64,000 nt of DNA from Pecten maximus (taxonomy: Eukaryota), in NCBI RefSeq assembly GCF_902652985.1, contig NC_047017.1, forward strand, positions 47,554,001 to 47,618,000. Direction: 5' to 3'. The position numbers and the translations under genes are program-made. Positions within the stretch are counted from its first letter, which is position 1; each line of letters opens with the position of its first letter. Shown piece after piece: positions 40,601 to 43,600 of this stretch. The notes under the pieces are model-generated. The model did no database searches. It had not been told where the DNA came from and was given only the letters and a program-made list of their open reading frames with translations.

Positions 40601-43600
40601 TACCCTGTAATTTCCTTTGTAGTTCCTTGTTCTCTTTTTCTAAAACTTTTATCTTTCGCTCAAAAGCCTCAGCAGCTAAAGTTTCTAACTTCTCCGAATC
40701 CATCTCGCTTACATCCTGAAGTGTTCCAAGGTCTGAAATTTGTCTGTAAATAGAAATCCACAAGAAATCACATTAATTTAACACTGAATTTTGACCACAC
40801 AAAAACTCCAAACTAAATAGAGAATAGTTAAATAACAATGACTCATACTTATTGAATTTTCTTTACACATGTCACAAAGCTTTATTTGAGAGTGGTTTCA
40901 AATATTTCCAGATACAAATGTATGATAACTGGAGACTTACGACTCTGACGTAAAGGAAAATCCCACAAACGGAAGATGATGACCTTTGAATGCAGCATTT
41001 GATATTGGTGGTACTGAATCCTGCAAAAATAAATAATTTTACATTAAATAGCTTTACTAGAATCCAATTCTTAATTCAAGCATATAACTGAAATTTCATC
41101 ATCTTAACTTAAGCTTTCAAAGAGAATGAGGCGATTTCTTTGAAAAGTCATTGTATTAAAGCATCCAATAACAGTTTTTCATCTGTAATATTACCATCTA
41201 TTTAAAATCAGATTGGTAATATTGATTTATAACTTATATATCAAACATGTTATTCAAGAGCAGGAGTTTGAATTGATTTAAACATATTTTATTTGCATAT
41301 TGATTATATACACAAATTGATTGGGCACAAGTTTTCAACTTATACTAAGTCCGTTCCAGATATTAATTAATAATATACATATAGTTTGAATTGATTCCTA
41401 CTCAACTGAAATAGCTCTTTTTCCATACTAAAGGCAAACATTACTAGTTTTTTTTTATCCTACATCCTATTCATTACCAAATATATACTTACAGTATGTC
41501 TGAAGTCAGCATCATCAACATCAAAATTGGAAGTGTCTGTAGGGCTGCTCACTTCAGGGACATAGGGTGGTGTCACTGTAAGTAGAATGTCTATGTTACT
41601 GTATGATGTTAGGGGACATAGGGTGGTGTCACTGTAAGTAGAATGTCTATGTTACTGTATGATGTTAGGGGACATAGGGTGGTGTCACTGTAAGTAGAAT
41701 GTCTATGTTACTGTATGATGTTAGGGGACATAGGGTGGTGTCACTGTAAGTAGAATGTCTATGTTACTGTATGATGTTAGGGGACATAGGGTGGTGTCAC
41801 TGTAAGTAGAATGTCTATGTTACTGTATGATGTTAGGGGACATAGGGTGGTGTCACTGTAAGTAGAATGTCTATGTTACTGTATGATGTTAGGGACATAG
41901 GGTGGTGTCACTGTAAGTAGAATGTCTATGTTACTGTATGATGTTAGGGGACATAGGGTGGTGTCACTGTAAGTAGAATGTCTATGTTACTGTATGATGT
42001 TAAGGGACATAGGGTGGTGTCACTATAAGTAGAATGTCTATGTTACTGTATGATGTTAGGGACATAGGGTGGTGTCACTGTAAGTAGAATGTCTATGTTA
42101 CTGTATGATGTTAGGGGACATAGGGTGGTGTCACTGTAAGTAGAATGTCTATGTTACTGTATGATGTTAAGGGACATAGGGTGGTGTCACTGTAAGTAGA
42201 ATGTCTATGTTACTGTATGATGTTAGGGGACATAGGGTGGTGTCACTATAAGTAGAATGTCTATGTTACTGTATGATGTTAGGGGACATAGGGTGGTGTC
42301 ACTATAAGTAGAATGTCTATGTTACTGTATGACATAATAGAACACTTAACTGACCAGGAAACACTTGTTTATGCACTCGTGTGTTTATTTTGAGTTTTAA
42401 TAGTACCAGACACATCCGAGTCAATAGTAAGAAGCTGAAGAAGACTACTAGTTGTCGCCTTTAGCCCATGTTCATTGCTAAACTTGTATAAAAACTTCAC
42501 ATTTAGTTCAGGAAAGACATTCATAGAACTGTATAAACTGTATGTTAATTCTCAAATTATTATTATTACATTATTAATGGTCCATTAATACTGAAAAGGT
42601 CATTAGGGCCAACAAATGGCAATAAAAAATGGGTGATAAGCATATGTATATATATAAATATCAAATAGATAAAACACATAATAATGTGTTGGTACACTAT
42701 TGAATAAAGTTCAAAATTATTGTGGCTATGGCTAGTCATTTGTTATCTAACACTGATATGTTCATTTACAAATGTGTGTAACAAAACCACTGAAGACAAA
42801 ACAGCAGTGAAATTCGTAATCCCCTTAAACATTTCATCTTGACATTATTAGTTTATTGCTACATTTGGCCCAATCATTGGAACAATCTATTCTATCCATG
42901 AATTGTGCCAAAATATCACTATGTTTTTTTTTTCAGGAAAGAAATGTGAAAAAGAAGACTGATGGTAGGCTAATGCAGAAACAATAAGTCCACAGAGATT
43001 TCCACATATCAATCTCCTATAGCTCCTTCTCTTATACAGAATTTAAGTCATCTTAGTCCACAGAGATTTCCACATATCAATCACCTATAGCACCTTCATT
43101 TATATAGAATTTAAGTCATCTTAGTCCACAGAGATTTCTACATATCAATCTCCTATAGCTCCTTCTTTTATACAGAATCTAAGTCATCTTATCCTAAAAA
43201 TCAATATCAAAACTGTATTCTTACATATAAGGCTAAATGTAGTTCTTTGTGAAACTGAAATAATTTGTCAATGTGTTTAGCCCTGTCCCTTGGTGTGTAT
43301 AAATCTTTAGTACTCACTGGTACGGATATTCTCCCAATCAATGCCTTCAAACCAGGGATGATTTTTGAAGTCATCCAATCCATTCTTCCCTAATCGTTTG
43401 TCTGCACCACATATGAGTAACTTCAACAGATCTTTGGCATCATCGGAAATATCATCTACATCATCAGGGAATTCAAACCGCGTCTGGAAAAAAACAACAA
43501 AATAATGACAATAAAACATCCAACAGTCTACCAAAAGATTATTTAGAAACAGTAATCTCTCTGGAATGTAAAACCCAATACAATTTAAAAAAGAAAAAAA

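Follow-up and report, generated by a model that had tools for sequence, protein, structure and literature searches.

A minisatellite across the 3' splice site of a kinase exon

The window, by which we mean the whole 64-kb stretch of scallop DNA analysed here, carries a kinase gene whose sense strand is the minus strand of the window. In the part of this gene described below, a minisatellite occupies the 3'-terminal part of an intron, crosses the intron/exon border and continues into the following exon (a slash in a sequence marks the splice junction):

43318-43483, minus strand: upstream exon (exon 8), 166 nt, encoding the end of the kinase domain (TRFEFPDD...GIDWENIRT), with the donor A/GTGAGT in phase 1; seen in RNA contigs
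41576-43317, minus strand: intron of 1742 nt, GT..AG, defined by an RNA joint; the array occupies its last 756 nt (41576-42332)
41557-42332, minus strand: minisatellite, period 56, 13.9 copies, 98% matches, indels 0 (TRF and unit table)
41493-41575, minus strand: genuine exon (exon 9), 83 nt, encoding the start of the AGC-kinase C-terminal tail; defined by RNA contig joints
40941-41020, minus strand: downstream exon, 80 nt, encoding the hydrophobic motif; from the sequence and RNA contig joints

The exons were queried singly against proteins. Exon 8 matched residues 297-351 of human MRCK alpha (phmmer, E=9e-20), with MRCK beta second and DMPK and ROCK far weaker, and exon 9 matched MRCK alpha residues 355-376 (phmmer, E=4.6e-7) as well as the start of Pkinase_C (E=0.0014); exons further upstream gave Pkinase matches. 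As the two exons flanking the intron find their best matches in MRCK and are contiguous there, the host is identified as an MRCK (CDC42BP)-like kinase gene.

The TRF array at 41557-42332 bears out the 56-bp acceptor-spanning minisatellite of the original prediction. On the sense strand, its unit consists of the last ~31-37 nt of the intron (...tctacttaCAG), 19-20 nt of exon start (TGACACCACCCTATGTCCC) and a junction of ~6 nt, (C/T)TAACA, and is without a G run. TRF also reports a higher-order period of 223, equal to four units. The unit table lists two units of 55 bp, and in 2 units CCCTTAAC replaces CCCCTAAC, both of these variant units likewise ending at TAA. The five exon-nearest units are identical and all variant units lie at the distal, upstream end of the array, a distribution that would be expected of a young, homogenising array. 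The terminal unit continues into the exon at 41575 and similarity stops 19-20 nt inside it, the first 19-20 nt of exon 9 being the last, partial repeat unit. This repeated exonic piece encodes PPYVP, which aligns to APYIP of human MRCK alpha/beta; since these residues are conserved with human MRCK, the direction of copying was from exon to intron.

Fourteen acceptors and the reading frames behind them

An exact search with the 18-nt exon start TGACACCACCCTATGTCC found 14 copies, each following ...acattctacttaYag:

41575, minus strand: genuine acceptor (exact match and RNA contig joints)
41631, 41687, 41743, 41799, 41855, 41910, 41966, 42022, 42077, 42133, 42189, 42245 and 42301, minus strand: 13 decoy acceptors, each given by its first exon-like base (exact matches)

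Every one of the 14 acceptor coordinates that had been predicted was reproduced in this way, as were the three acceptors that were said to read TAG in place of CAG, which we found at 42301, 42245 and 42022 (CAG stands at 10/13 decoys). All 14 acceptors are identical from ~-37 to +19. Beyond this stretch they diverge, the genuine acceptor leading into ...GTCCCTGAAG and a decoy into ...GTCCC(C/T)TAAC. Exon 8 ends in ...ACC A/GTGAGT and thus in phase 1, again as claimed, and in the frame set by this exon each decoy reads TPPYVP or a longer variant and then meets a stop, after 7 or 11 codons; our translations agree here with the early stop proposed for every decoy (MTPPYVP and a stop, or an 11-residue form). 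A decoy-spliced product would lack the hydrophobic motif encoded by the exon at 40941-41020.

The CTAAC motif that had been described as branch-like is present in the array, but it belongs to the inter-unit junction and not to the ancestral acceptor. CTAAC, and with it the in-frame TAA, falls within the ~6 nt between adjacent units and is not found ahead of the first unit, and the junction resembles neither the upstream flank (..ctattatg/tcatacag) nor the exon continuation (..GTCCCTGAAGTG). As the junction matches neither flank and is missing before the first unit, the ancestral acceptor cannot have depended on CTAAC. Judged by the positions of AG dinucleotides (-25/-24 and -17/-16), GTAAC with its A at -21 is a more plausible branch-point candidate. 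Pseudo-exons formed by donors within the unit were considered and rejected, the available GT contexts (ACA/GTAACA, ACA/GTGACA and TAT/GTCCCC) being poor by eye and no joint of this kind having been seen.

The unique part of exon 9 (41493-41556) contains perfect inverted repeats, CTGAAGT directly after the repeated 20 nt and ACTTCAG before the donor; a hairpin formed by them could join the acceptor and donor regions, or could be a chance occurrence in coding sequence. We also considered, and rejected, a masking of the decoys by RNA structure: a fold of two units plus the exon gave z = -1.98, and the sole feature of the centroid was the hairpin in the unique exon part (CUGAAGU...ACUUCAG).

The array in the genome and in a second DNA sample

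A search of the whole genome (918,306,378 bases in 3983 contigs) with the unit returned six matches, all of them within the array. The unit is therefore specific to this locus and arose by local tandem amplification; an origin from a dispersed repeat or transposon was rejected on the same grounds, the unit matching this array alone genome-wide.

The array was also compared with X4, a DNA sample that is independent of the reference and comes from a different sample and study. Contigs of X4 span both array borders (41283-41586 and 42303-43036). Its main unit contig has a depth of 224.8 against ~30 for single-copy sequence, that is 7.4x, where the mean 31-mer multiplicity in the reference is 8.6, and its variant-unit contig has a depth of 58.2, or 1.9x, where the reference multiplicity is 2.2. 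The values of 7.4 and 8.6 fit a copy number in X4 that is similar or slightly lower, short contigs being unable to size the array. Together, the border contigs and the unit depth show the multi-copy state in this second sample, and the array is therefore not the assembly artefact that had been raised as a concern.

The acceptor joined in transcript contigs

Logan contigs from four runs were compared over positions 40550-43750. The RNA runs X6 and X7 gave a spliced contig of 5094 nt with identical figures and are probably one data set filed twice, while X8, from a separate study, gave a spliced contig of 7312 nt. Common to all three are the joints 43318 to 41575 (which skips 1742 nt, GT..AG), 41493 to 41020, and 40941 to 40743. 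A joint from 43318 to a decoy was found in none of the transcript contigs of these two independent data sets.

Contigs internal to the array were likewise absent from X6/X7, where the mRNA contig has a word depth of 23.3 and the array words are 8-10-fold repeated. X8 contains one array-internal contig, of 86 nt and depth 2.4, whose 31-mers occur ~9.8x in the reference; this corresponds to ~0.25 per copy, or ~1.3% of the depth of the mRNA contig (18.8). The array-internal contig could equally well come from pre-mRNA, stray DNA or rare RNA spliced to a decoy. Because the array words are multi-copy and decoy-spliced RNA would keep all downstream units, the lack of such contigs in X6/X7 suggests that decoy-spliced RNA is rare at steady state. 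Assembled contigs lose rare variants and cannot reveal isoforms degraded by nonsense-mediated decay (NMD), so that a hole in the contigs by itself proves nothing, and evidence of this kind is insensitive to decoy use of a few percent, or of more if the products are efficiently degraded.

Minisatellites in the window and a second array on the contig

In the 64-kb window, about ten minisatellites (periods 29-116 bp) cover ~15% of the sequence. Besides the array across the acceptor of exon 9, the tandem repeats of the window include:

3217-3753: minisatellite, 39 bp x 14
6478-6960: minisatellite, 33 bp x 14.5
8657-10310: minisatellite, 116/58 bp x 14, 1.7 kb
15976-18723: minisatellite, 49 bp x 57, 2.7 kb
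42987-43191: tandem repeat, 68 bp x 3, 91% identity, in the same intron as the acceptor array, ~130 nt downstream of the exon 8 donor and excluding the splice site
45268-48640: minisatellite, 39 bp x 86, 3.4 kb, 94% identity, in the intron that precedes exon 8

Assuming random founding duplications, a summed unit length of ~480 bp and ~60 junctions from ~30 exons (a rough count from recognisable exon ORFs), ~0.45 junction-straddling arrays would be expected, and one is observed. With introns so rich in minisatellites, a single array of this type is therefore about what chance predicts in the window. A repeat of 44 bp x 2.1 at 39768-39864 was examined as a possible second case and rejected, being wholly intronic and upstream of the acceptor near 39751.

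A second acceptor-side array does lie on the same contig, 30 Mb away (58 bp x 85, 17198853-17203776). Its unit holds ...cattacag/CTATGTGAGGGTACTGGCCC, and the last unit runs as ...cattacag/CTATGTGAGGGTACTGGCCCAC... into an exon that has an open frame with a hydrophobic stretch and ends at a GTAAGT donor. The acceptor-side type of junction array thus recurs in this genome.

Two further observations concern repeated sequence near the locus. The array at 45268-48640 can be read mechanically as two minus-strand frames of 571 and 547 aa, which are almost certainly non-coding. The depth of X4 DNA climbs to 120-354 around 41192-41405, and an RNA contig of X6/X7 (2077 nt, depth 50.9) touches 41299-41317 and 43026-43043 over 18-19 nt each; these signs point to a short dispersed repeat lying in the intron that follows exon 9.

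Discussion

Our analysis indicates that the MRCK-like gene of the scallop carries a mirage minisatellite, a tolerated by-product of introns packed with minisatellites rather than a device, and that exon definition selects the acceptor; we put the probability of this reading at roughly 0.78. A segment of ~50-56 bp across the intron/exon border would have undergone tandem duplication and then, presumably by slippage or unequal exchange, multiplied to 13 extra copies, which would have left the genuine border as the last unit of an intronic array. In the present-day transcript, U1 bound at the donor would stabilise U2AF/U2 at the closest 3' splice site upstream, the one at 41575. A premature stop far upstream of later exon junctions is a textbook NMD substrate, and rare decoy transcripts, with their stop after 7-11 codons and many later junctions downstream, would probably be removed by this pathway. 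The argument from truncation and NMD in the original prediction is, as a prediction, well founded.

What sets the genuine acceptor apart lies behind it, as only the last copy precedes the proper body of the exon (GAAGTGAGCAGC..., GATGTTGATGATG) and, 83 nt further along, the consensus donor ACT/GTAAGT. Since the acceptors are identical from ~-37 to +19, the choice between them must come from further downstream and not from the strength of the 3' splice site. Simple 5'->3' scanning predicts use of the first acceptor, and the joint to 41575 that is seen instead argues against it. The first of the two alternatives in the original prediction, in which exon definition favours the acceptor closest to the donor, fits these data, the contigs joining 43318 to 41575 only. 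Why exon definition by itself should pass over the nearest decoys, whose use would make exons of 139 or 195 nt, is not obvious.

It is conceivable, and in our judgement unlikely, that the decoys, mainly those nearest the exon, are appreciably used all the time and their products hidden by NMD, at a fitness cost that is tolerated and with no regulation involved. The nearest decoys share identical 3' splice sites with the genuine one and would define exons of <300 nt, the arrays of the human 6-16 and CBS IVS13 introns use one or two of the pseudo-sites nearest the authentic site (PMC1557585), and the array-derived contig in X8 would be in keeping with such leakage. Against this stand the lack of any contig with a decoy junction and the use of the authentic site alone in F7, LMNB2, PDGF, amphioxus Adh3 and the amphioxus globins.

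We consider it quite improbable that the array acts as a VNTR splicing rheostat, the other alternative of the original prediction, in which capture by decoys yields NMD substrates and array length, under selection, sets the amount of productive MRCK mRNA. The ingredients are there: all 13/13 decoys, of which 10 have CAG, retain a complete acceptor context and lead to early stops, they are transcribed ahead of the real site, and X8 has a low-depth RNA contig derived from the array. That contig, however, amounts to ~1% per copy of the mRNA depth in X8 and has no counterpart in X6/X7, and the two independent data sets agree in lacking a decoy junction in any transcript contig. The array is moreover young and uniform and shows no sign of constraint, chance placement suffices to explain it, and this type of repeat has been reported as splicing-neutral in amphioxus (PMC3087553). 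A wider proposal, that decoys are meaningfully used with NMD following, that array length is a heritable cis-modifier of MRCK dosage and that scallop genomes seed junction minisatellites above chance through a transcription- or splicing-linked mechanism, likewise strikes us as improbable. That the array is a collapsed or expanded repeat which does not exist in the animal is scarcely credible, for although tandem repeats are well known to cause assembly errors and 776 bp of repeat lie beyond the span of short-read contigs, X4 has border-crossing contigs and its unit depths (7.4x, 1.9x) match the reference (8.6, 2.2).

As a mirage minisatellite, the array provides a natural acceptor competition in which, out of 14 identical 3' splice sites, the only one seen in assembled mRNA is that closest to the exon body and at the greatest distance from the upstream donor, an outcome that favours exon definition over simple 5'->3' scanning. 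It also calls for caution in gene prediction in repeat-rich mollusc genomes, where a decoy may be picked and a truncated protein called.

The published literature on pseudo-sites and duplicated acceptors, as far as our search covered it, consists of NAGNAG work and the F7 paper only; acceptor-side arrays have been described elsewhere, under the name 'mirage'. In human introns, F7 IVS7 (a 37-bp VNTR in intron 7), 6-16/IFI6 (25 pseudo-sites), CBS IVS13, LMNB2 and PDGF have arrays whose first unit spans the exon/intron border, and whose identical pseudo donor sites are functional but normally silent, the exon-adjacent site being used (PMC1557585). The scallop array resembles this type in that its terminal unit spans the border and the intron holds repeated, identical pseudo splice sites. 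In contrast to all five of these cases, which are donor-side, it spans the 3' splice site, the donor at 43318 being single copy, and is thus their acceptor-side mirror image. The 5'->3' scanning from the exon that has been proposed for F7 cannot alone explain why the last of the 14 scallop acceptors is chosen. A further parallel is CBS 844ins68 where, in the account of Romano et al. (2002) cited in PMC1802585, a 3' splice junction is duplicated, the distal site is chosen and the mRNA is normal. There too, going by that account, the acceptors are identical and the downstream one is selected, but CBS has one 68-bp duplication as against the 13-fold array of the scallop, and the choice is attributed in it to G runs between the sites, which the scallop unit does not contain.

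Also close to the scallop array are the mirages of amphioxus, minisatellite duplications of intron/exon borders that do not disturb splicing (Ebner et al., PMC3087553). Adh3, for which length polymorphism and somatic instability were shown, BflGb6/BflGb9, and the further cases TnC and PGBD5 (PMC3902484) share with it a border-spanning unit, an authentic border in terminal position and normal splicing, and many amphioxus mirage units keep their AG/GT signals. The scallop array has each of the structural traits by which mirages are recognised: its repeats are tandem, head-to-tail and of minisatellite unit size, its unit combines an intronic splice signal with part of the real exon, and its terminal unit is the authentic border. 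Regular splicing, too, is undisturbed at the level of transcript contigs, a level at which rare isoforms are invisible. In BflGb6, the intron's 3' end together with the 5' portion of exon 2 is repeated (PMC3087553), which places the repeat on the same, acceptor side as in the scallop; the scallop array differs from it in having 13 extra copies rather than 3-6 and a unit of 56 bp rather than 150-160 bp, and from the amphioxus cases as a whole in lying in a mollusc, that is in another phylum, and in another gene. This type of repeat is already described, a point that the original prediction did not recognise, and the scallop MRCK array is a further example of it, involving no new principle; with it, mirage minisatellites known from cephalochordates are seen in a mollusc as well.
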